64,000 nt of DNA, taken from assembly GCA_965644295.1 (NCBI GenBank), contig CBFFRP010000182.1, positions 124,001-188,000 on the forward strand, given 5' to 3'. Shown here piece after piece: positions 3,470 to 60,091 of the stretch (its first letter is position 1; the number at the start of each line of letters is the position of its first letter). The notes beneath the pieces were generated by a model. It was given only the letters and a program-made list of their open reading frames with translations, had not been told where the DNA came from and searched no databases. Made by a program: the position numbers and the translations under genes. Origin of the DNA: Paraphysomonas bandaiensis (Eukaryota; Protista; Chrysophyceae).

Positions 3470-5090
3470 TCACAAGAATATAAACGTTGTGCAAACTGGA
3501 GTTATCAAACACCCTAAAAAGAATACGAATATAGCTCCATAGAGCCTCCAGTCCATACTCTTGTTTTCTTCGACGTGCATCTTATAATAGGCCGCACCAG
3601 GTAAGATCAAGCTAATCATCGTTGCGCTTGTCGCTCCAACGAATGAAAAAATTACACCAAGATCCGATACTAGAAGAGCCACACCCAAGCTCAGACCCAA
3701 ATAGGAGGCCTGTATGAACAAATTTCAATGCAAAATACAATAATTACACAAAGGCGATTGTCAATACCGTGACTATTATGTATCGAAACTTGTTATATCT
3801 AAGCCACGAGTCATCATCAGCATCACACCCTCTCCAAAGTCCCAGAGCGGAATTCCTTCCAGGATGAACCAAAAGTGGATACGAGAATGCCACAAGCAGA
3901 GAAACAAATATACGGGCAATTGTAGTAACGGCAGTTTCTGCATCACACTAAGGAAATATAGTACAAGGCTGGGAGATACTGGACATACATACATATAAAG
4001 AACATGTGTGATACATACTCGGGTAACTAATGAGGATATTCGAGTTAACAGCGTCTCCGTAGGTGAGAAATCCCGCAATGGCGACAACAATGTATATCGC
4101 AAGAGCAGTGCCAAGGGACACACCTATGACGCTATCTACTCTATATTGAGATGGATTGCGAAGTTCATTTACCACCGGGAAGATATTCTATGTAATATAT
4201 GAGTGCATACATATCATCAGCTAATCATCCACTCAACAACGTAGAATAATGAAAAACACAAATATATGCCAAAAAATATAAATATCTCGTACCGGCTGAA
4301 GAGATAAACCGTAAACGAATATACTCAACACACGGAATGTGTCTTTATTCACTGAAACAACGGGGCGATCACCAACGCATTCGTCATCTGCATCCGTATC
4401 TGCACAGGGATCGAGATTGTCTCGAGGAACTGCATAGAGAAGCACCAAGAAGGTAAGAAAGATCACAAACATGACCGATAACCCTGATGTGTACTTGAGT
4501 GCGTCCACTTTCTTGAAGCAGCTCAGCGGTGCCACGATAGCAAACCCGATAAAAATCCATGGCTCACGATTCAGCCAGATTCCGTCTAGACCAATATTTT
4601 CCATAACATCTGGCATTAGACCTCCTACAAAAGTGGTATGAATACATACACAAATATCTTCTAAATAAAACGCACCGATAACAATTAAATATGAAGCACA
4701 TACACCAAAGCTCTGTATAACAACAGAAAAATCTATTAAAAAAGTGAGTTGTGGTACGCTGGCTTCAGTAACGGCATAGAAAGATGCAGGTGGAGGTACC
4801 CGTCCTGCACATAGAGATAATAGATGACATGATAGGACATTACATGCACCAAAAAAGAGGATAAGTGCAGTTCCAAGTACTCCCCCACAATATGCCACTG
4901 CATAAGGGAGACCAAGTACACCACTACCAACAATTGTATTAAGTAAATTGATGTAGCATGATAATGTCGAAGATTCGTTTAATGAAACGTATTGTATGGG
5001 TTCATCTGGATCAGTATACTGAGAATAACTTGATAAAGTTCTTGATTTCTTACGATCACCATCCGATTGTAGTATATTATCTAACAACAT
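3470..5090 (-). CDS. Amino-acid transporter, AAAP/Aa_trans family (AVT5/6-like), multi-exon
   Basis: NLLNTIVGSGVLGLPYA, VGATSATMISLILPG and many TM segments spread over ORFs 4233-5090, 3948-4175 and 3470-3721, separated by short GT-AG introns. Confidence 0.9.
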
Positions 5091-5666
5091 GTTTGTATAT
5101 AGAATTATGCCGTCAAATTCTAGTACATCTCAGTGATGTGACCATATCAGTTGGGGGAAAACTGGATGGTGATGTACAGCAGAGTATGAATTGTAGGTAT
5201 GGTCTCTTAGGGGAAAAACTAGGGTTATTTATGTAATTCCCGGTTATTTTTAGAATTGGGATATGGAAATAGAGGAGTTTTATAGTTTTAGAAGTTGGAA
5301 ACTTGTATTTTATAGGATTAGGATAGTAGATTATGTAGCTATGCATCCATATCCTCGACGAATTCTACTGTATACCTGGTATACACACCTGTACAATTGA
5401 CCAGCACTATATGGATGTATGTATACTGCTTCGTAATAGATATTAGGTGCCGATTGGTGGGTTTTTTGGTGGTTTGGTGCCAGAATGGACACGTTGGAGG
5501 TTTTTTTGCTTTTTTGGGGGGTTTTCTGATCATTTTCCTTTCCAACATTCAGCACACTCGTATCGGCAGTCAGCATCTTATTTTTCGGGAATAAATTGAA
5601 TCAAAACTACTCTATCTCTTATCGCCTCTAATGCGACTTGAAATTTTTTAGCACCTGTATATTATT

Positions 5667-5886
5667 GGGTGACTACCTAAATTGCACAAACACATAAATG
5701 CATAAAAAATAGGCTGCATAAACTCATGAATTTATGCAGATTTATGATTTTTTAGGAGACCCCTCCGGACCCCTCGTACAAACTATCCTATATGCATAAA
5801 CATATGCAGAAACTGGGTCTGAATAGATTTTTATAATCCCAGACTTTTTATGCATTTATGTATTTATGCAATTTAGGTAGTCACCC
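5667..5886. mobile_element. 220-bp MITE (PIF/Harbinger- or IS5-like) with ~42-bp TIRs and a 3-bp ATT TSD
   Basis: gggtgactacctaaattgca(c/t)aaa(c/t)acataaatgcataaaaa in inverted orientation at both ends; ATT at 5664-5666 and 5887-5889. Confidence 0.85.
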
Positions 5887-6079
5887 ATTGTTTTCTACTC
5901 ATAATACCCTCCAAAAACTAATCTTATCATAACGATTAAATAATTGGGAGCATTTAAATAGTATTGATGATCGCAAAAATAGTACACATGCAAGTCTTTA
6001 CATGCTATTATTATGGGCACATTTAAACATGAATGTACTTAAACTTCATAGGTACTTCTTTTTATAAAGTCATTTAAAG

Positions 6080-8500
6080 ATGAGCAACTTACCTCAAAGC
6101 ACCAAAGAAATTTTAATCGATTTAAAAAATGCATATCAACAAATCCAAGACCCGTCTACTCCCCCTGATGAGCTCATGACTGCGCTGAACGCGATAAATA
6201 TCGAAAGCTCATCTCTTGAAGATTTATGGCATATCTATAGCGCTTATTCTAACTATACCGAGTCACATCACCAAACGCCATCTGACGCTTTTAGCGTGAT
6301 TTCTAACGGCCTCCATGCATTCACAAATCTTTTTTATAACACTCATTCCAACGAGACAGAGTATCGACAACAACATTTTTTTGAGGTTCTTGGCCGTTTT
6401 TCTAGCCTTGGTCCTATAAAGATTCTCGATAACATCCAAAAAACAGGTCTTTTAACTGGAGAGCACGCGCAGATTAATTTCTATGCCATCGTCCGACATA
6501 GAAACCCATTAAGTGTTATACGAGCCCTTTATGGAAACGAAAGATTTGTTGTCGGGGAATATGGGCAAGATAATTTTGATGCCATAAGCAAGCACCCGAA
6601 TCCAGGAAGCGTTCGTGCGGCCCTTTATTCAATAGAAAGAAACCCTTTTTTCACCGGAGATAATGCACGACTTAATCGCACTGCTGTAATTAACCACAAG
6701 TTCCCAGAGAAAATTGCCGATGGCCTCGCCTGGCTTCAAAAACAAGGCCTTTTAACCGGAGAACATGCGCAGGCTAACTTCAATGCTGTGGTTACACATC
6801 AACACCCTCTCGTTGGGCAGACCTTTTGGTCTTGGGTTAATCAACACCTTTTTACTGGAGAGCATGCGCAAGTTAATTTCAATACAGTGATTAAGCATCA
6901 AAATCCATGGGCCGTTTCGCAAGCCCTTTGTCACTTCAGAGTTTTACCTTTTTTAGCTGGAGAGGATGGACAAGTAAATCGTGATATCGTAACTGGGCAT
7001 CAGAAGCCATGGAAGGTTTCCATGTCCCTATGCTATCTCCAAAGATCTGGCCTTTTAACCGGAGAGCAGGCGCAAGCTAATTTCAATACGGTGGTTGGAC
7101 TTCTGGACCCATCAAGCGTAGCCCTCGAATTCCTCGAAAAAGCAGGTATTTTAACGGGTGATAACGCACAGGCCAATTTTAATGCTGTGGTCAGAGTTCA
7201 AAATCCACAGCACGTGGCTAGACTTATGCAAAAGATAATCAATATGAATTTCATGATGAATTTCATAGGATGGCAAACGGAAAAAAATCAGACTCAATTT
7301 AATCAATTGATGAGTTATTCAAATATACTATTTGCTGAGGATACGGGTCCCTTATGGGACGAGATACCTAAACGTATTTTCACGGAAGAAGTCTTAAATC
7401 GCATATTCCAAATTTGTCGCGCAAACCAAGTAAACCCTGTTGTGGGTCGAGCGCATCTCTCTAATTACATTAATATCGAATTATTGGGTATGAGAGAGGG
7501 TCAGCGGCAACATTTTAACCGGGCTCAAAGCACCCATACGGCAAGTGTACATCAAACCGTGTCTGAATCTGCAACACGCTTAGAGGAAATGTATGGAGAA
7601 GAGATTGATGATTTAACTGAGAGATTAGGCGAAATACATACCTGGGTTTGTTCTATAACAGACCATGAGCATGAAAAACGCGCCATTAAACAACTTGTTA
7701 ATTCCCGATATGAATTTAAAGACCCCGCGTCCGGCGTAACCACAAAAATACTTTTAGTGCTTAGTTGGATAGCTATACATGATGACTCGATGAGAATAGG
7801 TACCTTGGAAGATGCAAAAGCATTATTACTAGAAGGCCTTTTGGATATACAGCGGGCTTACAATTTAAATGATGCATTTGAGGACCGGGGTGGGAGAGAT
7901 AAAACAAGCTGCGCCTCTGGAACGTTCAATAAAATTATCGAAAAGCTTGTCGGTGTGCATCCATATGTTGAGATGAAATACATTACCAAACAAGGGGCAA
8001 TGCTTAAACTAAAACCTCTTATTATTGAAGCTGCAACCTACTATTTAAGGAAGGAAAGCCATGAAGATTTAACAGTTGAGTTGCTTAAAAAAAACATTCT
8101 CCCCATTGTACGAGAGCAACTCTTCTTTGAATATGGAGAAAGTACGCTTGCAGAACTAACAAAAAATCATGAAAGCTTTGAAGATTTTAAAGCTTCTAGC
8201 AATTACACACCCTTTCAAAAATCACTTGAAAATGAGCAAGATACTGGTCTTGAGCTCATGATAAGTTACAAATTATCATGTCCTGATGAGGAACTTGATG
8301 AGGAGCTCAAAATCTTAATCACATCTGCTGTTAATGAGCCGAAGGAAGTGCCTGATGAAACCAGTGATAAGCCTGCAACTCGAAAAGGATTAAGAGCTAA
8401 GCGTCTTGCATTTTTTGACCCTCAAGAGAGCCAAGACAACCAAATCAATACAGTTCAGCATGCAGGCGCAGAAAGTCATATTGCAAATATCAATATCTAA
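6080..8500 (+). CDS. Bacterial effector-like protein: 8 tandem ~31-36 aa repeats plus a C-terminal QSTHTASVH...CxxGxFNK domain
   Basis: Repeat consensus (G/P)LLTGEhAQxNFxAVVxHxxP at ~6446-7207; QSTHTASVHQTVSESA and SCASGTFNKIIE motifs; acidic tail ending near RLAFF; intact 806 aa. Confidence 0.75.
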   Translation: MSNLPQSTKEILIDLKNAYQQIQDPSTPPDELMTALNAINIESSSLEDLWHIYSAYSNYTESHHQTPSDAFSVISNGLHAFTNLFYNTHSNETEYRQQHFFEVLGRFSSLGPIKILDNIQKTGLLTGEHAQINFYAIVRHRNPLSVIRALYGNERFVVGEYGQDNFDAISKHPNPGSVRAALYSIERNPFFTGDNARLNRTAVINHKFPEKIADGLAWLQKQGLLTGEHAQANFNAVVTHQHPLVGQTFWSWVNQHLFTGEHAQVNFNTVIKHQNPWAVSQALCHFRVLPFLAGEDGQVNRDIVTGHQKPWKVSMSLCYLQRSGLLTGEQAQANFNTVVGLLDPSSVALEFLEKAGILTGDNAQANFNAVVRVQNPQHVARLMQKIINMNFMMNFIGWQTEKNQTQFNQLMSYSNILFAEDTGPLWDEIPKRIFTEEVLNRIFQICRANQVNPVVGRAHLSNYINIELLGMREGQRQHFNRAQSTHTASVHQTVSESATRLEEMYGEEIDDLTERLGEIHTWVCSITDHEHEKRAIKQLVNSRYEFKDPASGVTTKILLVLSWIAIHDDSMRIGTLEDAKALLLEGLLDIQRAYNLNDAFEDRGGRDKTSCASGTFNKIIEKLVGVHPYVEMKYITKQGAMLKLKPLIIEAATYYLRKESHEDLTVELLKKNILPIVREQLFFEYGESTLAELTKNHESFEDFKASSNYTPFQKSLENEQDTGLELMISYKLSCPDEELDEELKILITSAVNEPKEVPDETSDKPATRKGLRAKRLAFFDPQESQDNQINTVQHAGAESHIANINI

Positions 8501-8529
8501 GGCATACTCAAAAACTAGTTATCGAATTT

Positions 8530-8570
8530 TGATCTTGCCACGAAAAAACGGACACCTCACTAAGCGACCA
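8530..8570. mobile_element. IS3-family terminal inverted repeat remnant
   Basis: TGATCTTgccacgaaaaaacGGACACctcaCTAAGCGA follows the IS3 end pattern TGATC-N-GGACAC-N4-CTAAG; no partner end or transposase nearby. Confidence 0.6.
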
Positions 8571-8616
8571 TTTTAACTTTGTTGGCTTTGAGCGATACAA
8601 CGCCACATCTTGTTAA

Positions 8617-8646
8617 GTTGACATTCGTCAACACGCTTGCTAGACT
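8617..8646 (+). promoter_or_regulatory. sigma70 promoter with an overlapping palindromic operator
   Basis: TTGACA (8618-8623), 17-bp spacer, TAGACT (8641-8646); palindrome GTTGAC-attc-GTCAAC at 8617-8632. Confidence 0.8.
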
Positions 8647-8669
8647 TAAAATAAAGCAGTGGAATTGCG

Positions 8670-8912
8670 GTGAGACCAAAACATCCTAATAAAACAATTG
8701 AGCAAGCTATAAAACATGCTGAATCAAAAGGGTGGCGATATCAGTCGTCCGGACAATCTGCTCATGCATGGGGACGTTTGCTTTGTCCATATAAAAGCAG
8801 AGAAGGGCATGCTATGAGTGTATGGTCTACGCCAAAAAGTCCTGAAAATCATGCGAGACAAATTAGACGAAATATTGATGCTTGTGAACATCAAGGAGAT
8901 AAAAATGAATAA
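8670..8912 (+). CDS. HicA-like putative toxin
   Basis: 80 aa, basic; GW...SAHAWG and STPKSPENHAR motifs; GTG start; overlaps the downstream HTH gene. Confidence 0.7.
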   Translation: MRPKHPNKTIEQAIKHAESKGWRYQSSGQSAHAWGRLLCPYKSREGHAMSVWSTPKSPENHARQIRRNIDACEHQGDKNE

Positions 8913-9456
8913 CTCATATCAATTTACTCTAGTTCTTGATGGTGTTGATGAGAAAACATCTGGCCTAGAAGATGCTTTGTTTGAAGCAGGATGTGATGAC
9001 GCACTAATTAATTACAAAAATGGCGTTGTATATCTTGATTTTGATAGAGAGGGTGAGGATCTTGAGCGAATTATTATATCAGCCATAAAAGATATTGAGT
9101 CAGCAGAGATTGGTGCGAGGATTGTCAGTGTTGCTCCAGAGCATTTAGTTAGCTTATCTGATATTGCTGAGCGTATATCTATAACAAGACAAGCCGTTTC
9201 GCTTTTAATGCAAGGGGCACGTGGGTCAGGAGATTTTCCTAAACCGATATTAAAAATAACTAACAAAAGCCCATTATGGCGTTGGAGTGCGGTTGCAGAA
9301 TGGTTTTATCAACAGGGTAAAATTCACGATCACGATGTAATTGACTCGGCCAACGTAGTTGAAGATATTAATGCGGCACTTGAGTTAAGAAATAAAAAAT
9401 CATTTGCGCATAAAAGAAAAATACTCAGTGAGCTTACAAGGGTACGTGCTGCATAA
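8905..9456 (+). CDS. Putative antitoxin / DNA-binding protein (HicB-like N-terminus, AlpA-like HTH)
   Basis: AAGGAG SD at 8893-8898 before ATG 8905; ALFEAGCDDA; HTH LVSLSDIAERISITRQAVS...FPKP...PLW. Confidence 0.8.
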   Translation: MNNSYQFTLVLDGVDEKTSGLEDALFEAGCDDALINYKNGVVYLDFDREGEDLERIIISAIKDIESAEIGARIVSVAPEHLVSLSDIAERISITRQAVSLLMQGARGSGDFPKPILKITNKSPLWRWSAVAEWFYQQGKIHDHDVIDSANVVEDINAALELRNKKSFAHKRKILSELTRVRAA

Positions 9457-9510
9457 TTTAAAATTAGGTCTTCACCGTAATTCTTAACTTAGCTTCTCTT
9501 AGATTCAAAA

Positions 9511-9544
9511 ATTAGTGGTGATTATCCAGGTAATCACCAGTAAT
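9511..9544. terminator. Hairpin between the two convergent TA operons
   Basis: attagtggtgatta-tccagg-taatcaccagtaat, a 14-bp stem with one mismatch. Confidence 0.5.
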
Positions 9545-9605
9545 AGGTTGTGTGGAGAAACCAGTCCGAATTCAACTAACTAATGCAACCAAGTTTATAT
9601 TGCTA

Positions 9606-10019
9606 TTATTGAAGTGGCTTATTTGTTATTTCAGTCAATTGACCCGGATGATTATGTAGATTTGTTAGTAATTGACTTAGAGGCCTCGGCACAGGAAGTC
9701 TTCCTTTTTCATAACGGTTAAAAGCATTAACGCCACCGCCAAAGATACTCGCTGCCTGTTTCTGGGTTAGCTTTAATTGCTTTCTCACTTTCTTAACCTC
9801 ATTGGGTGTAAGTAGCCCATCAATCCTCGCCTTCTCTTCCTGAATTAAATGTGCAACTGCATTACTATCTTTCGAGCTAATAATACCTTCACCACAAGAG
9901 TTGCACCATTGCGCAGGCTGATTTATGACAAACTCAACTTGTTTATAAGTATACGTTACCGCCTTAATTTTGTGCTCTTGCGTAGACTCACCACATAGAG
10001 GGCATGGTTGTTTTTCCAT
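9606..10019 (-). CDS. mqsA: MqsA-family antitoxin (zinc finger + HTH)
   Basis: CPLC...CNSCGEG zinc motif; LTQKQAASIFGGGVNAFNRYEKG HTH; directly downstream of mqsR. Confidence 0.93.
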   Translation of the reverse strand: MEKQPCPLCGESTQEHKIKAVTYTYKQVEFVINQPAQWCNSCGEGIISSKDSNAVAHLIQEEKARIDGLLTPNEVKKVRKQLKLTQKQAASIFGGGVNAFNRYEKGRLPVPRPLSQLLTNLHNHPGQLTEITNKPLQ

Positions 10020-10020
10020 C

Positions 10021-10329
10021 TTACTTCTCCTTAAAAGATAAGATAAGCTCTCTTTTTACATTCACTTGAAATTTAATATACAAATCAACCTCATTGAAAT
10101 TAGTTTTATATACATCTTGCCAAGCAACAAACTTAGGATTTATCGGTGGCCTTGATTTATAAAAATTACGCTCTTGTAGCCCCTGGATTGCATCAACAAC
10201 ATCCTCATTAGAAAAGTTAAGTGTAATTTGACCTTGCTTCGCAGAAGATGTCATCAATAACTGTTCAGGGTTTAAAAATGCTTTTTTTATGCTATTAAGA
10301 TCATATGTTGGTGTTAATTTAGCAGGCAT
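10021..10329 (-). CDS. mqsR: MqsR-family mRNA interferase toxin
   Basis: PTYDL, FYKS, WQDVY, LYIK and terminal SFKEK motifs. Confidence 0.93.
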   Translation of the reverse strand: MPAKLTPTYDLNSIKKAFLNPEQLLMTSSAKQGQITLNFSNEDVVDAIQGLQERNFYKSRPPINPKFVAWQDVYKTNFNEVDLYIKFQVNVKRELILSFKEK

Positions 10330-10346
10330 TAAAAAACCTTAATAAC

Positions 10347-10396
10347 TAACCTTTAAAGTTATTTTAACTCACCTTTAAATTAACCTCAAGGGTTAA
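10347..10396. promoter_or_regulatory. Two MqsA-type operator palindromes upstream of mqsR
   Basis: TAACCTTTAAAGTTA (10347-10361) and TTAACCTCAAGGGTTAA (10380-10396) resemble the TAACCT-N3-AGGTTA MqsA box. Confidence 0.7.
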
Positions 10397-10585
10397 CTTA
10401 AATAAACAGCTATTCCCGCTTAAATTAAATTTACCTGTCCAAAACAGGAAGATGTTTTATTTTTGAACTATCCATGCTTAAACGCTCTAAAACTCGTTTT
10501 TCAAAGTAAGCAAATTTGTCCTAAATTAAAACTTTTTTGTTTTTTTATGCATAGAAGTTCAAAGAAACTTAAATTCGGTTCTAAA

Positions 10586-11161
10586 CTACCCTTGAAATGC
10601 AAGCCCTCCTTTTTCTCCAGGTGGAGGGCGCTCTTTAGGCACGCCTATAAATTTGTATAAATCATGCCAAGTCACCCATGTACTTATGGTGAGAAAGGCA
10701 CGTATTTTTTCAAACAAAACACGCAAACTACCTAAGCGATTACGTACATGTTGATAAACCTTACAGCAAAGCTGTTGCACCTGGTCAATTAAAAAAGAGA
10801 GCACCATAAGCATGGTCATTACCGAGCAAAGGTTGCTATATCCATGCCCATAATTATGCCCAAAATTATAACCTTGATTTTTTAGAGTGTTGAACGTCTC
10901 GTTTTCAATTTTCCACCGAGAACGTCCAGCACGCATGATTTCATAAGCATTCTTAGGGGAGATTTTAAGCTTGGTGACCCAGCTAAATCTTTGTGTTTTC
11001 CCATTTTTTTAAATTTCCGTGTATTCTAAAACATTAACGCGATAATCATGGTTGGCGTCGTTAAGCGGTACATCGGTGTAGTAATGAAAATGGTGGGTTG
11101 AGCCATCATCTGTTTCTTCAATATGTGTTTCTCCAGGCAGATCTTTTATCCAGTCAAAAAG
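10586..11161 (-). pseudogene. 5'-truncated bacterial DDE transposase (IS4-clan/ISNCY-like)
   Basis: LFDWIKDL...VPLNDANHDYRVNVLEYTEI*KNGKTQRFSWVT...GRSRWKIENETFNTLKNQGYNFGHNYGHG; in-frame TAA at 11009-11011; cut at the insert junction. Confidence 0.88.
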
Positions 11162-11389
11162 ATTACTGCAATACAACTACGGCTGGAATACAGATAATTG
11201 TTGTCTCAGTATTAGAGGCATCTTTGAACAAAAATATACATAGGATGCCGATACGCTCAGCAGATAGGCAGGCTAGCTAACGTATCCATACACCAATTCG
11301 ATCTGTCAATCTTAATACAGCCATATGTATCCACTTATTTAGTGATGAATTGTGATCTTGAATTGACTATGATGATATTATTTTACTTA

Positions 11390-12673
11390 TGCACGTGATG
11401 GAACTCACAGAGGAAGATCAAGTGTTTCCAGACTTTGCAACAGATAGTCAGTTATGGAGGCACACGTACAGGAAAACAACTGCGACACGACCCACATGTA
11501 GCGCAAGGAAGAAATAGAGTTACTATGATATGTATGAATCCATCATGTGCTTGGTGTAAGCGTCATAAAACATACTATATGGATAGTGCTGCAAGTATTA
11601 AGGAGCACTAGGTGTTGAGCGAGGATGTTATGAGAATTCCTTGTGTCGTCTTCGGAAAAGCATCACAGGTATATATATATATATATATGTATAAACTTTT
11701 CATTATTCAGTACTTCAAGAACGAGGTGTTGAACAACGAAGAGTTTGCAGTGATCATGAAGGATATTGGAGTCGGTCGTCGTAATATTAGCACTACCCGC
11801 ATTCAGGTGAGAAACACACAACAGCACTTTCATGTAATATCGCACATGTAAATTGTGCAATAGTAAGCTTACTATGTTAGGCAATGTGTATAATTGCTTA
11901 CGTTCTAATATTTTATACTTGATAGGATATACAGAAAGAAGTCAGACATTGTCCAATGGAGGTTCACATTTTCGATACTGTGAGCGAGCGAGGTATTGTG
12001 CATACCATCACGTATACAGTGCATAGAAGCGAGTTGGGAAATGTGGACTTGTCTAAGCAGAAATGGGACTGTGGAAAGTACCAACAAACAGGGCTACCGT
12101 GTAAGGATGCGTGGTTTCTGCTTAAAGAGTTGTATCCGAATGGAATGCCACAAGACCTATTTTCGGAGAAATACTTTCATAAAGACTGCTTTACTATGAG
12201 AGTAAAAAATATGCTTGCAGACGTGCCTGAAATGTTAGGCACGATTCACTCTACTTCAGAAGTTGATAATCGATTGCGATCCAAATCGTTTAGGACTATC
12301 AAAGCTCCTCTTTACTAATGATTCCAAGTCTTACAGGAGTTCGAAACGATGGACTAGCACCGGAGAAAGTTCTAGCAGGTGTTGTTGTCATATCCGCGTC
12401 AGATATATTTATTCTTATACATTTATAATGTACAACAGTTCTACTAGTCAGGCTTTATTCAAAAAGAAAAAAAAACAGTGTCCCGACTGTCACCAGTGGC
12501 TCTCGCGCAAGACCCTGCATCCCACCAGTGCATGTAGCAGGTATTGTATTCGTAATGGTATCAGTCCGCCTGAGGTTTTTCTTTCCGGTTATATTGACGA
12601 GTTGAATCACCCTAATGATGTCGCTGAGCTATCAGAATCGCCTGCTGAAGAAACTGCAACACTTTTTAGTTAG
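11390..12673 (+). pseudogene. Degraded MuDR/MULE transposase fragments
   Basis: VDLSKQKWDCGKYQQTGLPCKDA is a degenerate SWIM finger; C-terminal CPDC..H....C knuckle; stops and frameshifts; no DDE core visible. Confidence 0.7.
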
Positions 12674-14226
12674 AATATCTGTTGTGTATTCCATATTTTT
12701 TATGGCCGCATGTATATTATCGTTTAGTTGGACAATTACATATCTTTAATTTTAAAGAAATGTGTCTTTACTGTTGTTGCGTTGTTGCTCAGTGATAAAA
12801 TTCATGCACGGTGTTGAGATCTGAAGATTCTATATACTTGCAATTGAGTGCAGTATTATGTGAGATGCAAGGATCGAAAGATATACTGTATATGTAATTA
12901 GTACATTATATTGTGTAGTATGAAACTGAAGTAGAAGATTAGTGACTATACAGGATACGATCACTGAGTGTGTGGTTTGTACATTATAGTAGTAAATGAA
13001 TGGTGTTGAACACATCGAATACAACTTAGGAGAATAGTAAGCCCTAGCAAATAATGTCAACTTCTAATACACGGTAGACGGTAGTGTTTAGTGTTTTACA
13101 CTGTACTTGACTAGCTAGAACCTTTGACATACTACTAATAATAAATGATCACATTAACCACTGCATGTAATATTCTAGCTAGTTGAAATAACTTTTGTAA
13201 TTCTGTTATAGCTAGATACTAGATCTGATGTAAAAGAGTTTGAAAATAGTCCTTATCTACACAGTCATGAAAATTTACATGTCATACACCCTGATAATAC
13301 TAAACTGAAACCAAGACTATACACACAGAAAGGGGGAGGGGTCCTGGGGGCATAACAAGATTAATTTAAAAGGAATAAAACAGCTATATTTTATTCAAAA
13401 GAATATCAGATATTAGTGCGTAGTCAAAAGAATATCAACACGCGAATTACAATATCATTAACAGAAGCAGACAAATTCACTGTTAAAAAGTATACATAAA
13501 ACCAACTGTATGGAACTATTCAAGCAGTCACTAATCTACCTTCTACGAGTTACTTGTGCTCTTGCATGGAATCATAAGATTCGTTTGGCAACAAAGGCAG
13601 GGGATGTCAATCAAAGAAGATTATAGATATGCCAATATTTACTCATATATTTCTGATTCCTACACCTGTTCATCTGAAAGACTCTTATATTCGATCTCAT
13701 CGGAGTATAAGAGTGGCTAGCAGGACTATGAATGCATGTTCTTCGAGATCTAGCAACTGCTCCACGTTGGCCTTCTTTAGCCCTAGCTGTGTCGATAGAG
13801 CATCGAGCTGGGTCCCTCGTCCAACAGGAAAGCCATTCACAGGGGAGTTGTGAACACAATGTACCTTCCTGTCTTCTAGATGTTGGCAGTGAGTGTGCTG
13901 TATGTTGGAAAGGAAAATGTCAGAAAACCCCCCAAAAAAGCAAAAAACCCTCCAATGTGTCCGTTTTGGCACCAAACCACCAAAAACCCCACAAAACCGT
14001 GTCTTGATCGGCACCGGGCTCTATTATGGTCGGGCTTGTCTTATGAAGGAATACACATTCAGCTGAAATTCGGTCGTTTGTTTCATCTGCTGTTTGACCC
14101 GACTGATTAAAATTATTTAGACGAAAAAATTCATCTTAGCTGAATAAATGTAGAGCGGAAACTCCGCAGTAGAATATTCCTGTATATAGGTGGCTGTACA
14201 GCAGAATATATGGCGGGGGTATATCC

Positions 14227-14275
14227 AGTTTCAGTTTTCAGTTTTCAGTTTTCAGTTTTCAGTTTTCAGTTTTCT
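14227..14275 (+). repeat. (TTTTCAG)n minisatellite, about 6 units
   Basis: Read directly from the sequence. Confidence 0.9.
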
Positions 14276-14538
14276 TTTCAAATATACTATTCTGTACCGT
14301 ATACGGGTTTTCCGAAATAAGACCCACCCTCAGTAATAAACTTTCAATTCTCTGTATTTGCACTTTCAGTATGTGGGTGTGGACATACAGTACAGCAGCA
14401 TACAAATCCTCAATATATATACAGGTTTCATTGCACTCTGTTCCCTTAATATGCAGAGATTTATACATATAGAGATAATATTATAACGTATGTATACTCT
14501 CATCTACTAATCACTTATCTCTTGCTAACATAAGCTTC

Positions 14539-16040
14539 ATGTGGACCAACCCCACCCACTTTACCCTCCTTCTACTCCTCCCCTACATACATACCGTACA
14601 TACACTCTCCTTCCAGCCTCAAACAACTTATGAATATGCAGGTGTATTAAACGGTGTACTCCAACCAGGCTGTACGGCAACATCCGGATTCTATTCCCCA
14701 CAGGGCTATTATTACATAGCAACTGTAGGAGAGTTTCTTGAATGGACCCTTCCAGTAACATTCACTGGAGATTTTATTATACAATCTGAAGTACTTTTTG
14801 AGACAATTGATGCTACAGCTGCTGCATTTATGTTTGTTAATACAAATTCTGGTGTTGAACGATTTGGATTTGATGGTGGTGGCGAACGATACTTCATAGA
14901 AGGATCAAGTTTTCCACTTCGTTTTGGTGCACCCAGTCCTCCGCCTAATGTCTATCTCAATGTTGAAATCGTTCGTTTCAGTAATATTATGGAATTCCGG
15001 GTGAATGGTGACCTTATATTTAGTGAATATTACGACAAGGACATAACTCTCATTGGTTATCGACCACATAGAAGTTCTATGAGAATACGCTCACTATACA
15101 CCCAGTCGACAACAACTGGTAAGCAATAAATAAAAAAGAAATGTATTTGCGTTAATTGTATTTTAAATGTTCAGATAGTCCTACACATTTTCCAACTACG
15201 TCACCTACGCGATCTCCGACATCGTTACCAACAAAACCTCCCACTTCTTCACCAACAGTACATCCGACATCGACACCAACTAAATCTCCAACTTCCTCAC
15301 CAACTCCACTTCCGACATCGTTACCAACAAAATTTCCCACTTCTTCACCAACAGTACATCCGACATCGACACCAACTAAATCTCCAACTTCCTCACCAAC
15401 TCCACTTCCGACATCGTTACCAACAAAACCTCCCACATCTTCACCAACAGTACATCCGACATCGACACCAACTAAATCTCCAACTTCTTCGCCAACTCCA
15501 CTTCCGACATCGTCACCTACGGAATCGGAGCCCACAATCGGCCCCACTTCCTCATGTCAGTATGAAAGTTATGCCCTTGTGAATTCCACCTCTGGTGAAT
15601 CGATTTTTGTTCATTACAGCTTTGGTAAGCCGAAATTATATGTATACCATCGTGAATATGTATATCATGTATGTGACTATTACTGTGTTTAGTAAGCTAG
15701 AAATAACTTTCATTTTTCTCTAGATGATATTGGAAGGGTTCGATACTACACCCTACCTGTTGCTACATGGAAGCTCGCAATTGCAAATATAGATAGAAGT
15801 AGTAATGACTCTGTTCTTCTCTATCAGCAAGAACCATCTAGAAATGATTGCTATGGATGTACGTTCTATTATTGATATATATGGATGTTAGTGTTACTTT
15901 GGATGTAGGGCAGCACAGCTGGACACAAGTAGTGGAGCTGGATGGGGCCAAGTTAGGCAATTTTAAATTTTGGTCAATTAATTTTGAAATAGATGCCATT
16001 GACGGTGTGGCTTTTCAAGGTTAGCATTCACCTCCATAGT
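14539..16040 (+). CDS. Secreted protein with a beta-rich N-terminal domain and a mucin-like Pro/Thr/Ser stalk, multi-exon; 3' end uncertain
   Basis: Hydrophobic signal peptide MWTNPTHFTLLLLLP; PTxxPT repeats; GT-AG introns near 15119 and 15624. Confidence 0.7.
15217..15513 (+). repeat. 96-bp coding tandem repeat x3 (32-aa PT unit)
   Basis: ccgacatcgttaccaacaaaa recurs at 96-bp spacing. Confidence 0.9.
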
Positions 16041-25790: not shown

Positions 25791-28700
25791 TAGTGAATGT
25801 CTGATTATTTAGCAATAGGCGTTGAGACCTTGCATCAATTAGTGGCTAGAAGAATGCTAGTCATACTAGTTAGACCACTACCCGTAACTAATCAATACAA
25901 ACTCTTTTATCCTACTATTTAACGCTACAGAAGCTGCTTGTGCGTCGCCGCAAGCACCAAGGTGCAACCACTTCCGTTCTTAGTGTGTGTTATGAGGCTC
26001 GCCATGATCGTGTGTCCTGGGACTCACCGGCGCTATTGATCTGGGGGTCTCCCTTTGGGATGGGTCTCCATTGGTTTTGGAGGGGGCTCAGCGTTCTGAA
26101 TTAGGGTCTTGAGTGCACCTAGTTCCAGATGTGTGGGTTGAGGGTGGTGGGGATTGTTGGGAGGAGGGGTAGGGTTTGTAGTCTGTGTTACTGTGCTCCT
26201 GTGGGGCCGCGGGTGTAGATAGAGTTGTCGAAGCCGTCGGCGTTGTGGAGGTCTGGGCAGTCCAGTGCTCTGTCGGGTAGGACCTGTGAGGTGTGCACGT
26301 GTGTCTGGAGTCGGATACGCTGTGGGGGGTCGTCGTTGGACCCCTAGTAAGCGAAGGACTCTCGGGCGTTGTCTTGACTGACTGCGTTTCGGACGGGGTC
26401 TCGGGAGTAGCCTGGGCGGCCTTTTGGACATGGTGATATAGCGACAACCGCGATCCTGTAACATAAGCTTCGCTGCAGTGTAAAGCGGTTGCAGGAGATT
26501 AATAACCGCTGTTTCTAGGTTCCGTAGACTGTGTGCCGTCAGGTGGTTGTGTATGGCATCTCCGAAGACCGTTTCCAGTTGGGCTGCTGTGATGGTTCCA
26601 GTCCAGTATCTCTCGACCTGTGGGATGGAGGGATTCCAGGCTCTGCTGGAGAGTCTCCGTAGTGCAGATGTGATCCAGTTGGGTAAGGTCTGAGTTCTCT
26701 GTATTTCGTGGAGCACATTTTTATGCGATTGAAATGCAGTTTCCCTTATTTGGGTGATGGATTCATGTGTGCAGTCGAGGCACATATGTTTTAGGGAATC
26801 TAGTCGAAACCCGCAGTCAGAGCATGCGGCTTTGGTCAGGTCAAGCCCCTGTTTGGTTTTGGCCCGGTTCCTCCCTATGCAGAAAGATTTGTCCCATGTC
26901 AGTGCCGTGTTGAGTATTCTTTGGCGTAGATTTGAGCTGAGTTTGTCTTTGGATGCACTGCCATCCGCTTGAGCGAGTTTGCGCGGGAGGTGTACTCCGC
27001 TATTGGTCCAGTAGCCAGGCGCTCGATCAGGATTGTGTCCGTAGCGTTGATCTCTGGTTGAAGTGTAGTTCTCAAGTGTCCTTAGGTCGCAGAGATCCTG
27101 GAAATTAGTAAGGAGTGGGCTAGAGTAGTATGGCCGTCTTGTACTGTGCATACGCCAGTGCCATAATCCAGCAGTTAGTAAGCGTTCGATGGCACTGTCA
27201 ATCGCAATTGTACAGACAGTGTAGTTATTTTTTCCAAGGATGCGATCGACTTCATGCCAGTCTTCACCCGCAACTGCGTCAGCAATATAGATGCCCTTGT
27301 CCTCAAACGTCCACTCCGTTTCATCTGTGGTACGTCGTTCGGGATGAGACCTCACCCAGGTCACCTGTCGTTTGCAATCTCTGCTGGCCGCGATGCTTTC
27401 GAGTAGTACCCCTTTTGCACGGTGACCGAGAGCTCTGCGTCTTGTGGAGAGTGCTTCCTCAGTGCGGGTGCACACTGCCTGACAGTCTGTGTGGCTTCTT
27501 ATGTGTTCGGGAATACGTGTTGAGAGTATAAGCCCCATGGCTGTGCCTATGAGTTCATATGCGTATGAGTCCAAACCGGGCACGTCACGAAAGGGTGTAT
27601 CTAGTCGTAGTATTGTGGTTGTACCATCTTCCCAGGCATTTTCTGGGGGTAAGTAGACGACCGCTGCACCTCCTCGGTGTGTCCATCGTGTTCGCGGATT
27701 GACATGAGTGAGGCGACGCGTGGAGAGCGCACTGGCTGTGTATGATCCATCTGTGAAGATAGCCTTGAAAGTATCTGGTTGGACACTATTAAAGGCCGAG
27801 TTCTTGTTTTAGGTTGGTCAGCATGTGTTCATCCTGTGGTTCGGGGGGCTCAGGTTCCTGAAGGGTAAGGCCCAATTCCGTTCCCCATTCCCTGAGGCTG
27901 AGAACATAGTGGTGGTATTGGGGCTGTGGCTCTGTTGTCTGAGTGAGTAGAAAATGTGCTGCTTGACCTGCTTCTCCCCCGAGAGTTATTGCGCGCTGTA
28001 GAGATCCCCATTTTTGCTCCTGCGCCGAGTCTGAGAAACGTTTCATACCTAATCCGTTGTGCTTGAGTGAGAGGTAGATCAGTTCCGTGGGGTATCCAGG
28101 GCCTAGACTGAGGGCCTTTCTGTAGAGGGTTGCACAAGCAGCGTCAATTTCTCTGTACCAGTGTAGCGGCCATGAAGCTTTGGTGGCTCTATAGAGCAAA
28201 GTCGGTATGATTTGGGTCTCGATAACCATGACTTTACAGCCGGCTGAGGCCTGTTTAATCCCTAGGTGTGTGGTCACGACTTTCAGGTATTTTAGACACC
28301 AGTCATGGGAGGCCTTGTCTGTGATTGTGAGAGGAAGGTCTGCTCCGAGGTAATGTATCGACTCTAGTGATGTTTGGATAGGGACTGGGTGTGGGCGCCA
28401 TGACCAGTCGTAGAGAATGATGTAGCCAATGGGGTCGGAGGACTTGTTGGAATCCTGTAGGATCGGAAACACTGTGCAAACTACTTTGGGGATAGAGAGT
28501 TCCATTCCCGAAAGTACGCAGAACGCAGATATTTGTTGGGCAATGAGTTGGGCAGCGTGTATGGATTTAGCTATTGTGTTAAGATCATCCGCGAAGGAGA
28601 TCTTTATTTCGCCGGTAGTCGGAGTCGTGAGTTGAATAGTTGGTAACGTTGGACTCGTTGTTGACAGTTCAATGTCCAGCCACGTGAGAAGGATGTCGTA

Positions 28701-30237
28701 GAGTGCCACCCAGGCGCATGTGGATTTTGTGCCCCCTTGGGTGATACCCCTTTCGGCTTCGAAACCCAGACTGAATAGTGCAATGAAGTGGCCGTCTGCG
28801 GACAGGAGGTCAAGGAGAGACCGTGGCTCTATGTTGTTTGCCATGAATGGTGTCCAGGGAAATGTTAGACCGCCGGCATCTAAGTTGCCAAACCAGTCAA
28901 CTACATCGTCCGGAACGCCCAGTCGTGCCCACGCGATTGAGGTTAGGCGCAATTGAGTCGAAGGCCTTCTTGAAGTCCCAGAGTGTACATATATGCTGGT
29001 CGCCTTTTCGTCTTGCTTCTTCTGCAGCCGCGAGTACCCTTAGTATCGCTGTGTCCGTCCCGTTCCTCCAGCGATAACCATGCTGGGACGGATGCAAAAC
29101 TTTCTGTTCCTCCCATACGGTAAGAATTCTATGAGTGATTATCCTTGTTAATATTTTCCTACTGACTTCAAGCAGACCAATCGGTCGGAGATTAGTGAGG
29201 GAGGATTCTCCTGGTTTCTTGAGAATGGGAGACATTACCCTGTCTCTCCACCAAATGGGCACATGTGTATGTTTCCAGAGAGATCTGGTGAGGATGTAAG
29301 CCTCTCGCTGAACTACCGGTGGCCAGGATTTGACCATGTTGGAGGAGACCATTGAGGGTCCAGGCGCGCGGTTGAAGGAGAGAGAGTGAAGTGTGCAGTA
29401 GAATTCATCCTGGGTGATGTCTTTTGCAAGAGTAGATTTGAGTGTGGCTGCCATGGCCGGAGTGGTCTTGGTACAAAGGGCCCGTCGTAACCCCAGTTGC
29501 AGGGGAAGAGGGATTTTCGAGCGGGGGTGGAGTGGTTCCTGGCATGTCGCTGAGCCCGGATCAAGAAGGGATTTCCACCATGTAGGGTCATCCTGGAGCT
29601 GTTGTGCTACAGGGTCAAGTCCAGGAGGTTTGGCATGATGTTCACGGAAGTGCGCATTAATGCCTTCATGAATGTCTTGCGGTGTGTTGTGAGGATGTGT
29701 CCGTCAGTTGTTTTCACCGTGGTAAGTCGGAGTGGTGTTTTGACCTTGAGACCAATTTTCTGAAGAATTGCTTGAAGTCTTTTCTGCTGTAGCAGTGCCT
29801 CCATCTGATTGGTGCGAGCCGTGAGTCTAGTCCGCATTTCTGTCCTGGCTCTTCCATGAAGAAGTCCTCTCAGTCGCAAGGCAATTCGGAGGAGGTTTTT
29901 CTTGGTGGCTTGCTTTGCGTTCCAACCCAGGATTACTCGTGGGTCCGCGTTGCGGTGGCTGCACCAGAAGTTGATGTCTGATATGCCTTTGATGTGACCC
30001 TGAGAACTCCTGAGATAGGAGTCCCATCGGGCGAACCATGCAGTGATGATTTCGTTGGGTGGGGGTGGTTGCCGGGGGGCCGCGCCATCCATGCCGTTTG
30101 TATCCGGCAGAATTGAACATTTTTTGGATAATCCGCAAAACCATGAGCATTCCTTCCTGTATTACTCTCATTTCCGGGGAAAAGCCATTCTTGAACTTTG
30201 AGCGTGTGCGCTGACAACGTTCGTGTAGGCGTGTGCT
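25791..30237 (-). mobile_element. 5'-truncated, frameshifted non-LTR retrotransposon (RT + RNase H + Zn finger) with a 12-bp TSD
   Basis: RT motifs RAPGPS, LRPIGLLE, DFKKAFDS, GITQG and FADD; RNase H motifs AYELIG, HTDCQA, WVRSH and ADAVA; CxxC...H...C; TSD TCACTTCTCATA at 25779-25790 and 30238-30249. Confidence 0.93.
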
Positions 30238-31983: not shown

Positions 31984-32015
<32 letters not shown>

Positions 32016-32629
32016 GAAACACAAAGAAATACATACATACATACATACATACATACATACATACATACATACATACATACATACATACATACATACATAC
32101 ATACATACATACATACATACATACATACATACATACATACATACATACATACATACATACATACATACATACATACATACATACATACATACATACATAC
32201 ATACATACATACATACATACATACATACATACATACATACATACATACATACATACATACATACATACATACATACATACATACATACATACATACATAC
32301 ATACATACATACATACATACATACATACATACATACATACATACATACATACATACATACATACATACATACATACATACATACATACATACATACATAC
32401 ATACATACATACATACATACATACATACATACATACATACATACATACATACATACATACATACATACATACATACATACATACATACATACATACATAC
32501 ATACATACATACATACATACATACATACATACATACATACATACATACATACATACATACATACATACATACATACATACATACATACATACATACATAC
32601 ATACATACATACATACATACATACATACA

Positions 32630-32661
<32 letters not shown>

Positions 32662-32958
32662 CATACATACATACATACATACATACATACATACATACAT
32701 ACATACATACATACATACATACATACATACATACATACATACATACATACATACATACATACATACATACATACATACATACATACATACATACATACAT
32801 ACATACATACATACATACATACATACATACATACATACATACATACATACATACATACATACATACATACATACATACATACATACATACATACATACAT
32901 ACATACATACATACATACATACATACATACATACATACATACATACATACATACATAC
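31705..32958. repeat. (ATAC)n microsatellite, about 1.25 kb
   Basis: Read directly from the sequence. Confidence 0.99.
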
Positions 32959-33161
32959 AATCGTACGTAAGAGTTCTGCATCAACATCGTTGTATTCCTC
33001 CCTCTCTCCACTCTACACCGCTACACATACACAACCCTCCTACACAATCACATACACCTAAACAATCACAACTATTCAAATCCTCATTCAAACCCCCCTC
33101 TACACACATACATACATACATACAAATTACTTCAAACCATCACATATATAATCAAACAAAT

Positions 33162-46919: not shown

Positions 46920-47875
46920 CTTACTTCTACTTCTATTCACACTTCATTATAATACTATTCTCAACTACTATCATATCCTACAGGTAACTATCATACTTCT
47001 ATAGCTAGCACAACAACTGACAATGTGAGATATAGCATATCTACTTTATCGGTACTTATATGCATAGATATAGGACATTATCAAGCTGTATAGTAGCGAT
47101 TTAGGTAGGAAGTATAGATTTTTGAAGAGGTCCCACCTATAGGTGGTGTCGATTCGAATATCTGTTGGGTTCGGATTTTAGTGAAACAATAATTATAAAA
47201 TTTAAGAAAGAAGAACGGAACTGAGTAATGAAATATGCACTCTATATAACGGGATATATTATTCAATCTCGTCATAAATAGTATATGTCTCGTCATATTT
47301 TGATTACAACTTATTTACAACAATGATGAGGCAGAGTTGATGTTCATGATACCGACCTCGTCAAAATCAAAGTATATGCAATTATTGGAGGGGTATTGTA
47401 ATATAAGATGAGAGATAATACAGGAGTAATAGAGGATTAGAGGGTATATGAATGTCAAGCACTGAGTGTCATACAGAGAGGTACATAGTGTGTATTAGAG
47501 GGGTAGGAGTGATCTATTGCAATAGTATTGTTAGTTAAGTGGTATCAATACAATTGAAATAGATGTTTAGAACCCTGAAATATATATACAAGTGTATGAA
47601 TATGGTAACATATAGACATATAGCTATACAAACAAGAAGGAGTGTGTGTACTATTAAAGTTAAAGATACATATATACACACAGGCTGCATGGAGGAATAT
47701 GGACAGAGTATGTACTGCTGTTGTATACAGACACAAAAACCATAGTTTTTTTAATCGAAACTAAAAAATAACTGAAATTATGACACTATCTCCCACTTTT
47801 CTATCCGTTTATCTCTATACAAAAGTACGTCGTCGTTTAGTATACATAAATATCAGTAACAGACACTTCTCTCTA

Positions 47876-48010
47876 TCGTATTTTTCGGAAATAAATTGAA
47901 GCAAAATACTTCTATATTACTAATATACAACTACGGCTGGAATACAGATAATTATTATCTCAATATACGAGGCATCTTGGAACAAAAATATACAAAGGAT
48001 GCCGATACGA
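47876..48010 (+). repeat. Solo fragment of the MULE subterminal sequence, an empty-site paralog of the bacterial insertion point
   Basis: First part matches 5575-5615 and the rest matches 11162-11255. Confidence 0.85.
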
Positions 48011-48185
48011 TATATATATACACTACTGCTTGACTGTTCCTTTAAGACACTCACTCTATCAGATAACATCATAAACATGAACAGATATATAATCACTGTA
48101 TACTGTATATAGATTAATTATCAGTAACCGTTACTTGTTATTCATATATACATATATCAGTTGCTCGTTATATACATACATACAT

Positions 48186-57990: not shown

Positions 57991-59091
57991 CTAACCATCA
58001 CTTATAGCAAGGGTTACAATTACTCTAACTATAGACAAACTTATAGCGAGAGCAATTCCCATTCCTCTATTTCTTAGTTCTGATTTCGTTAAATGTACAC
58101 CAGCGGTCTTAAATTGTATCGGAAACGCCAGCAAAACCTGGATAGTATCATGCCTATTTATTTCTTTACTGGACATAGCTGGCCACTTTGCCGATGCCAG
58201 TGTTCGATGCAATTGAGTCGCAAGGATATTAACTTGTAAAATTTCTGGGCATATGAATCCAAGAAACATAGCATCTGGAACACAGATCAATACCACAACG
58301 AAAAGAACAAACGCAACAGCATAACTGACACTATGATTATCAATAGCACCATTGTAATGAAATGCTACAATGATGATACACAATGCATCACACAGCATTC
58401 CAATTAACAATAAGCCATGAATCCAAAATGATTTCTCTGCGATACTTTCGATCCGTGCTTGTGTACGTGTATACACAGATGGGCTGAGCGTACCATCTGA
58501 AGCGGATGCAATTAAGGACTGGGTGAGTCTTTGAGCATGACGCGCATCTGCAATAGTAACTAACACAACTGTTGCCATATACCCTGTAAATGCGTATGAT
58601 CCTAAATAGAAAGTAACCGCAGCCGCATTCGGATAATACGCGACATAAAAACTTAAAGCGAAAATATTAGCAAATTCAGTCACAAAGAAGTATAACTTAG
58701 AAGAATCCATTGATGTATAAAGTTCTTCAATAAAAACAGAATCAACCTCTGATTGAAAATGTTTTCTAATTGTAATTATTGCAACACGTAAAGCGATGCA
58801 TTTTAAGAGAGTTATAAACTGAAGAACCCACCAATACTCTGTTGCATCATAATATACAGCGAGAATACCAGCCAATAAAAAGAAGAATGTATAACATAAA
58901 AGTGAAAAACTAATAAAATAGTGCCATAATAATACAGGCAGAGAATAGTCGTGACGAGATGGACGATAAGATCCAAACAAATTAAGATAAAATAATATAT
59001 CAGATGATTCTGATAGAAGAGTTTGTTGAAGAGATGGACCGGTTAGAGACAATGGTTTGTCCATCTGATGAGTGGGGTCTTCTTCTGGCAT
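57991..59091 (-). CDS. Intronless ~366-aa multi-pass membrane protein, GR-like/7TMIC candidate
   Basis: About 7 hydrophobic segments; C-terminal FPIQFKTAGVHLTKSEL before the last helix; likely start MPEED at 59091. Confidence 0.7.
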   Translation of the reverse strand: MPEEDPTHQMDKPLSLTGPSLQQTLLSESSDILFYLNLFGSYRPSRHDYSLPVLLWHYFISFSLLCYTFFFLLAGILAVYYDATEYWWVLQFITLLKCIALRVAIITIRKHFQSEVDSVFIEELYTSMDSSKLYFFVTEFANIFALSFYVAYYPNAAAVTFYLGSYAFTGYMATVVLVTIADARHAQRLTQSLIASASDGTLSPSVYTRTQARIESIAEKSFWIHGLLLIGMLCDALCIIIVAFHYNGAIDNHSVSYAVAFVLFVVVLICVPDAMFLGFICPEILQVNILATQLHRTLASAKWPAMSSKEINRHDTIQVLLAFPIQFKTAGVHLTKSELRNRGMGIALAISLSIVRVIVTLAISDG

Positions 59092-59139
59092 TAGACTCAC
59101 CGTTATGATGAGGAGGATAATGATGCATGTCCACACTAT

Positions 59140-60091
59140 CATACATACATACATACATACATACATACATACATACATACATACATACATACATACATAC
59201 ATACATACATACATACATACATACATACATACATACATACATACATACATACATACATACATACATACATACATACATACATACATACATACATACATAC
59301 ATACATACATACATACATACATACATACATACATACATACATACATACATACATACATACATACATACATACATACATACATACATACATACATACATAC
59401 ATACATACATACATACATACATACATACATACATACATACATACATACATACATACATACATACATACATACATACATACATACATACATACATACATAC
59501 ATACATACATACATACATACATACATACATACATACATACATACATACATACATACATACATACATACATACATACATACATACATACATACATACATAC
59601 ATACATACATACATACATACATTTACAAACATACATACATACATACATACATACATACATACATACATACATACATACATACATACATACATACATACAT
59701 ACATACAGACATACATACATACATACATACATACATACATACATACAGACATACATACAGACATACATACATACATACATACATACATACATACATACAT
59801 ACATACATACATACATACATACATACATACATACATACATACATACATACATACATACATACATACATACATACATACATACATACATACATACATACAT
59901 ACATACATACATACATACATACATACATACATACATACATACATACATACATACATACATACATACATACATACATACATACATACATACATACATACAT
60001 ACATACATACATACATACATACATACATACATACATACATACATACATACATACATACATACATACATACATACATACATACATACATACG

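Follow-up and report, generated by a model that had tools for sequence, protein, structure and literature searches.

How does bacterial DNA first enter a eukaryotic chromosome? The answer has mostly been inferred from old, eroded cases, and it is still argued whether transfer from bacteria to eukaryotes is ongoing. We address the question at one locus in an assembly of Paraphysomonas bandaiensis (GCA_965644295.1), where a 5.3-kb block of Legionella-like bacterial DNA lies inside the chromosome of this protist, within a small host transposon. The stretch analysed, referred to as the window, comprises 64,000 nucleotides (contig CBFFRP010000182.1, positions 124,001 to 188,000 of the forward strand), and all positions below are counted from its first letter. 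An initial annotation, made from the letters alone, had proposed that the block splits a host repeat and was captured by end joining at a double-strand break. We confirm that the observation is real. No account of this insertion turned up in our searches of the literature.

One host repeat is split by a foreign block

According to the initial annotation, the two flanks of the block (5581-5615 and 11162-11255) occur as one contiguous sequence at 47881-48010. This is borne out by a comparison of 5520-5615 joined to 11162-11320 with 47800-48100, which gave a single local alignment of 136 columns (about 88% identity) to 47875-48010 that is continuous over the join (..CTCTAT|ATTACT..). The alignment and a family search identify 47875-48010 (forward strand), which had been taken as the empty site, as an uninterrupted paralogous copy of a miniature inverted-repeat transposable element (MITE), here called MITE-A, with its first 20 bases diverged. 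The split repeat actually begins at 5559; the start had been placed at 5581 because the 5' end of the paralog is diverged.

MITE-A is a high-copy host family with a consensus of about 157 bp and 10-bp terminal inverted repeats (TIRs), CGTATCGGCA and TGCCGATACG. The genome holds 902 candidates, with 42 scored matches at E values of 1e-38 to 1e-54; copy number, counted as candidates, is at least 900. In the window, the left arm (5559-5615, forward strand; 57 of 157 bp in the 31-copy family alignment) begins with the TIR CGTATCGGCA, and the right arm (11162-11255, forward strand; 94 of 157 bp from the paralog and the family alignment) ends with the TIR TGCCGATACG. In a MAFFT alignment of 31 MITE-A copies the joined window copy is gap-free at the join, and the consensus of the other copies, placed just before 11162, likewise ends in ..ATACTCTAT. 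The target has therefore neither lost nor gained letters: measured against the paralog and the 31-copy consensus, no target base is missing and no target duplication surrounds the block, as had been claimed. The letters flanking the joints differ (T|C at the left, G|A at the right), leaving zero shared letters at both joints and hence no microhomology. No match to an exact 29-base pattern spanning the right junction was found in JGI metagenome contigs, and no tRNA gene that could have served as an integration target lies in 5000-14500.

A second and independent empty site is provided by the element in which MITE-A itself is nested. This element, which spans about 5446-14021, has long TIRs, and MITE-A sits immediately inward of the left one; the TIR arms (5454-5559 and 13891-13995) form an inverted repeat of about 110 bp with 81-87% identity, 8.4 kb apart. 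Two sister copies (C260:19094-21962 and C457:99037-101904) match it at 97% identity along all 2.77 kb that follow MITE-A on the right. The remainder of the window element (11256-14021, with its right TIR at 13891-14021) matches them full-length at this identity (C260:19199-21962 and C457:99142-101904), and its left TIR (5446-5558, outermost 10 or so bases lost) is 94-95% identical to both. The sisters are without everything from 5559 to 11255 and read directly ..CAGCACA-CT-CAGCAG.., which shows that MITE-A duplicated 2 bp of its target (CT at 5557-5558 and 11256-11257; single in the sister transposons, which have no MITE-A). No second contig of the assembly joins this TIR to MITE-A.

The carrier looks like a Mutator-like element (MULE), judging from its long TIRs and from the 9-10-bp target duplications of the sister copies. 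At C260 the duplication measures 10 bp and contains one mismatch; at C457, which is set in an ATGT repeat, the pattern is consistent with a duplication but ambiguous. The two internal open reading frames (ORFs) tested (11956-12315 and 12263-12670) returned no significant Pfam match, so that no MuDR-type transposase was found in them, and the element looks non-autonomous. A SWIM-like motif noticed by eye at 11956-12318 had suggested a MULE transposase; this candidate is unsupported by Pfam and was dropped. In the window copy (5446-5470 compared with 13995-14021), about 10 outer bases of the left TIR are gone and a further TIR deletion is internal. The copy has probably lost its mobility.

The block is chromosomal and predates a later host insertion

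As a read-side test we used Logan contigs of four sequencing runs (X5, X8, X11 and X12), none of which is the likely source of the assembly. X5 carries another species label; we refer to its source as organism B and to that of the present assembly as organism A. It yielded one contig of 5,377 letters that aligns to 5566-5660 and then directly to 5887-11191. This contig begins in the left arm of MITE-A, crosses the left joint with 50 reference letters of that arm, skips a second host element, MITE-B, and covers the whole block. Its depth is 99, compared with 90-118 in neighbouring host contigs, which is host single-copy depth; 16 substitutions and a few indels separate the contig from the window. 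X11, under a third label (organism C), gave low-depth pieces with the same variants as X5. The initial annotation had named poor alignment across the join, or reads for the empty allele only, as outcomes that would speak against it; we find a good alignment, and the X5 contig is the filled form. Many apparent joints of 5615 to 11162 in the run contigs suggested an empty allele, a candidate that we rejected, as these joints are other MITE-A copies.

MITE-B (5667-5886), also a MITE of host origin, is 220 bp long, has TIRs of 43 nt and duplicated its ATT target (5664-5666). Many copies (such as L033 and L034) with 98-100% identity, two of them at 100%, occur elsewhere in the genome, and six other copies have 3-bp target duplications of the form A-N-T; the family looks currently active. 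Since 5667-5886 is host DNA, the bacterial part consists of 5616-5666 and 5887-11161 (both on the forward strand), about 5,323 bp rather than the 5,546 bp of the whole insert. The short left piece, which includes the ATT target, is continuous with 5887 onward in the X5 contig, and its first 30 bases have no match elsewhere in the host's own genome. MITE-B is absent from the X5 allele and therefore inserted after the lineages had split. The bacterial insertion is older than the split of A and B; MITE-B is younger and confined to lineage A. By its reported coordinates, the empty MITE-B site in organism B seems to be one ATT below the predicted length.

The block was also found in further runs. 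X8, a run of organism B whose status as RNA is a guess, yielded one contig of 4,185 letters on 6040-10236 and nothing on 10380-10979; it looks like a transcript. X12, a poly(A)-selected marine metatranscriptome, holds near-identical contigs on 7066-9930 that reach no junction and carry the organism-B variants together with an A>G change of their own at 9613. Either the block or its host lineage occurs in RNA sampled from natural seawater.

Gene content and donor affinity

When the block was matched to the rest of the assembly, no other contig, and no bacterial contig, was hit. It is single-copy, and mqsR, mqsA and the transposase fragment described below are each unique in the 62.5-Mb assembly. 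Its G+C content (0.34-0.41) is close to that of the host. For three of its proteins (the 806-aa protein, MqsA and the transposase), Legionella or Legionellaceae are among the closest named relatives, and the main part (5887-11161) is called Legionellaceae-like on these gene affinities.

The right end of the block cuts through a bacterial transposase gene, as the initial annotation had noted. The C-terminal 191 codons remain (10586-11161, reverse strand), and tblastn relatives of this fragment have 426-443 aa, the best of them, with 56% identity, being encoded on a Legionella israelensis plasmid. The gene was originally about 430 residues long, and some 240 N-terminal codons are missing. A match to NF033591 (E = 8e-5, below the NCBIfam cut-off), together with tblastn, weakly points to the IS4/ISNCY type of insertion sequence (IS); the first 50 codons of the fragment gave nothing usable from Pfam or NCBIfam. 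The left end falls in non-coding sequence; from there it is about 240 donor bases to the start of the first gene (464 window bases, 223 of which are MITE-B and its duplication). Both ends are thus independent of the donor's gene boundaries.

That first gene is an intact ORF of 806 aa (6080-8500, forward strand) with internal repeats of about 33 residues and no match to a Pfam or NCBIfam family. Its closest relatives, at no more than 51% identity, are metagenome proteins without names, and the named ones are mostly from metagenome-assembled genomes (MAGs) of Legionellaceae. The closest homologue (51%; P0001, JGI) adjoins genes for a MerR regulator, a resolvase and a Tn3-family transposase and a TraY-like gene; the gene family is therefore carried by bacterial mobile elements. 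A look-up of the 806-aa protein and of a 212-aa ORF protein of the window in public assemblies, which possibly do not include this or near genomes, returned no match.

Two small two-gene modules follow. An 80-aa ORF (8670-8912, forward strand), for which Pfam and NCBIfam gave nothing usable, overlaps by 8 nt the gene of a 183-aa plasmid-type DNA-binding protein (8905-9456, forward strand). The latter is 48% identical to enterobacterial-plasmid genes annotated as DNA-binding protein, and these have the same small ORF upstream. On the reverse strand lie an intact mqsA antitoxin gene (9606-10019; PF15731, 116 bits against a cut-off of 30; the sole copy in the genome) and an mqsR toxin gene that is intact in the window (10021-10329; PF15723, 74 bits against 26.2). 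The two are adjacent and both exceed the Pfam gathering scores. The named relatives of MqsA are from Legionella species; the nearest overall, 90% identical, is a metagenome protein without a name. One metagenome contig (L071) carries the same mqsRA gene pair in the same order with 85% nucleotide identity. An ENA metagenome scaffold (L070:1183-1600) holds a 5'-truncated mqsA with 91% nucleotide and 99% protein identity to the window gene, situated between a HigB-type module and rpsO. The scaffold represents a lineage related to the donor, where mqsRA is itself reduced to a remnant.

A proposed route of entry and its alternatives

We propose that host end joining ligated a linear Legionellaceae-like fragment, about 5.3 kb in length, into a double-strand break of the chromosome, and we give this reading a probability of roughly 80%. 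At 5616 and 11161 we found no transposon-type ends and no inverted repeat, the target is not duplicated, and the ends of the fragment are arbitrary. The break would have occurred after base 57 of a 157-bp MITE-A that was already sitting just inside the left TIR of the MULE-like element. A plasmid or a genomic island is the probable source of the fragment, given its combination of two small two-gene modules (one of them mqsRA) with the gene of an effector-like repeat protein and a partial IS. If the name Paraphysomonas is right, the host is a bacteria-eating flagellate, and ingested or intracellular Legionellaceae would be a natural source of DNA; the donor's lifestyle and the DNA's route to the nucleus are part of this interpretation. 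Host repair would then have ligated the fragment with two blunt joints and an unchanged target, before the lineage of organism A split from those of B and C. Later, in lineage A alone, the still-active MITE-B would have inserted itself into the block, while the bacterial genes decayed unconstrained. As to the repair pathway, we infer that classical Ku-dependent joining would be most likely, because the joints are blunt, share no letters and involve no loss or gain of target; polymerase-theta-type joining may be an alternative. The host genome has two Ku-domain loci above the Pfam cut-off.

Several points weigh against this reading. An imperfect direct repeat (CTCTAT | CTCTTAT, 5610-5622) straddles the left joint; it may be due to chance, or may be a short templated filler of theta-type joining. 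The pathway is read from two junctions only. The donor is in no collection, the best relatives reaching 51% for the large protein and 85-91% nucleotide identity for mqsRA, so that the breakpoints on the bacterial side are uncheckable. The X5 contig ends 30 letters into the right arm of MITE-A, one short of the 31 letters of the tool's bridging rule, since an assembly with k=31 must break within a 900-copy repeat. More generally, Logan contigs break at high-copy MITE arms and are blind to the MULE context in organism B and to an empty allele. Finally, the X5 contig covers the 95 bases of 5566-5660 with 84 letters (11 unplaced gap letters, 0 substitutions). This gap may belong to the MITE arm, to the initial bacterial bases or to the joint itself, and the left junction of the other lineage is possibly not letter-identical. 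An X11 contig seems to show a similar gap in 5566-5660.

Bacterial sequence that reached a host contig by misplacement or through a chimeric read is a fair first suspicion, given the intact bacterial ORFs and the host-like G+C. This explanation is close to refuted: two precise junctions restore one repeat, a host MITE-B with its own target duplication sits inside the block, X5 has the filled form at host depth, without MITE-B and with its 16 substitutions, and the lower-depth X11 pieces repeat these variants under a third label. The transposase remnant at one edge would, for its part, fit a composite bacterial transposon that moved into the chromosome by its own IS. With some 240 N-terminal codons missing, the surviving IS end internal to the block rather than at its boundary, a left edge that lacks a second IS, and neither inverted repeats at the block ends nor a target duplication, we regard such entry as excluded. 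The initial annotation had preferred end joining at a double-strand break over IS-mediated transposition, and all three of its structural premises hold.

The long TIRs of the carrier, about 110 bp each and 8.4 kb apart with the block between them, and the 9-10-bp target duplications of its sister copies, typical of MULEs, raise the question of whether a Mutator-like element gained the bacterial DNA itself, by template switching in transposition or gap repair, as in Pack-MULEs. We consider this very improbable. The block has no joint with the MULE backbone but is enclosed in a nested MITE, which the blunt joints restore exactly; it is single-copy, and the 97%-identical sisters are without both MITE and block. 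In addition, the outer end of the left TIR is lost and the element's two tested ORFs contain no transposase domain. Somewhat better placed, though still unlikely, is capture within a MITE-A copy elsewhere, followed by transposition of the 5.5-kb composite into the MULE-like element by means of the MITE-A ends. The intact 10-bp TIRs and the clean 2-bp CT duplication around the whole composite would agree with such a move. The single genomic copy speaks against it, although cut-and-paste transposition would leave no second copy; the mobilising element would have to be 35 times its normal length, and capture by end joining would still be required, merely at another place. Ligation of the fragment into a double-strand break remains the simplest reading.

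Decay since insertion

To follow the fate of the block we translated the listed differences between the window and X5 alleles; 79% of coding sites are non-synonymous. Thirteen of the 14 coding differences change an amino acid, and the 806-aa ORF, which is open in every allele seen, accounts for 9 missense and 0 silent changes. At least 13 of 14 would be expected with P = 0.17 under neutrality, compared with P = 1e-4 at an omega of 0.2 and P = 0.002 at an omega of 0.3, so that values of 0.3 or less are rejected (P < 0.002); omega between the mqsRA genes and their bacterial relatives is 0.04-0.11. Purifying selection after transfer, the mark of a domesticated gene, was not detected in this comparison. 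The pattern is compatible with neutrality and unlike that of constrained genes; the block therefore evolves as unconstrained DNA, whatever its transcription.

Each allele carries damage of its own. In the window, the transposase fragment is interrupted by an in-frame stop (11009-11011) that is a lysine codon in the X5 allele (variant at 11011); as the same codon encodes lysine in B, the stop most probably arose in A after insertion. In B, the X5 and X8 allele of mqsR is broken by two deletions, of 5 nt at 10035 and of 7 nt at 10133. We read this, from the alleles compared, as neutral decay.

Significance and other features of the window

The process seen at this locus is known rather than new, and the locus is a clean and recent instance of it that involves several genes. 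It is resolved to the base, with a target defined by two nested empty sites, blunt and lossless joints and arbitrary fragment ends; the strain-specific MITE-B gives a relative date, and the differences between the two alleles reflect drift, not selection. The locus favours the view that phagotrophic protists continue to acquire bacterial DNA via ordinary break repair, mostly non-functional on arrival. A broader reading, which we put forward tentatively and consider rather doubtful, is that DNA keeps passing from intracellular Legionellaceae, or from their plasmids, into the nuclear genome of a bacteria-eating flagellate, where it is captured at breaks within transposon-rich DNA, and that the locus is one case of this. 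As the block occurs in RNA libraries, including poly(A)-selected ones, and the effector-like 806-aa ORF is open in every allele seen, this might even be the earliest stage of the takeover of an effector gene by its former target, with delivery by the donor's own type IV secretion system rather than digestion as a possible route.

Outside the locus, a 24-nt tandem repeat of at least 9 units (15152-15692, forward strand) lies just downstream of a 196-aa ORF and encodes a Pro/Thr/Ser-rich stretch; it looks like part of a host mucin- or cell-surface-like gene. The window also contains a 4-kb composition outlier (26001-30000; G+C 0.51-0.54 compared with about 0.38 around it) and two 1-kb bins of very low G+C (32001-33000 and 59001-60000) with extreme GC skews of -0.93 and -0.70.

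Comparison with known systems

Recent nuclear insertions of mitochondrial DNA (NUMTs) enter breaks by nonhomologous end joining, often with blunt joints and with neither deletion nor duplication of the target (Hazkani-Covo et al. 2010, PMC2820518). The locus described here resembles insertions of mitochondrial or plastid origin (NUMTs and NUPTs) in its arbitrary-ended foreign fragment, its two repair joints and its freedom from duplication, microhomology and target deletion. The source differs: in those cases it is an organelle, whereas here it is a bacterium, and complete bacterial operons are present on the fragment together with the remains of an IS.

Pack-MULEs are Mutator-like elements with captured gene fragments, and here too foreign DNA is found between long MULE-type TIRs. 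In contrast to a Pack-MULE, the cargo is bacterial and single-copy, sits in a nested MITE with blunt joints and is absent from the sister elements.

Integration of the transfer DNA (T-DNA) of Agrobacterium depends on polymerase theta, has a defined border end and typically leaves junctions with microhomology, filler and small deletions. In both cases a break in a eukaryotic chromosome receives bacterial DNA and no bacterial integrase takes part; the joints described here are blunt, however, and we found no border, oriT or relaxase.

Transfers from Wolbachia to arthropods and nematodes, and the foreign genes of bdelloid rotifers, land in repeat-rich or transposon-rich DNA and are mostly non-functional and decaying, with some transcribed. 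As in those cases, DNA of an intracellular or ingested bacterium would have come to lie in repeat-rich nuclear DNA. Here, by contrast, the host is a free-living unicellular flagellate, so that there is no germline barrier to cross, the donor is Legionellaceae-like, and two nested empty sites fix the breakpoints to single-base precision.

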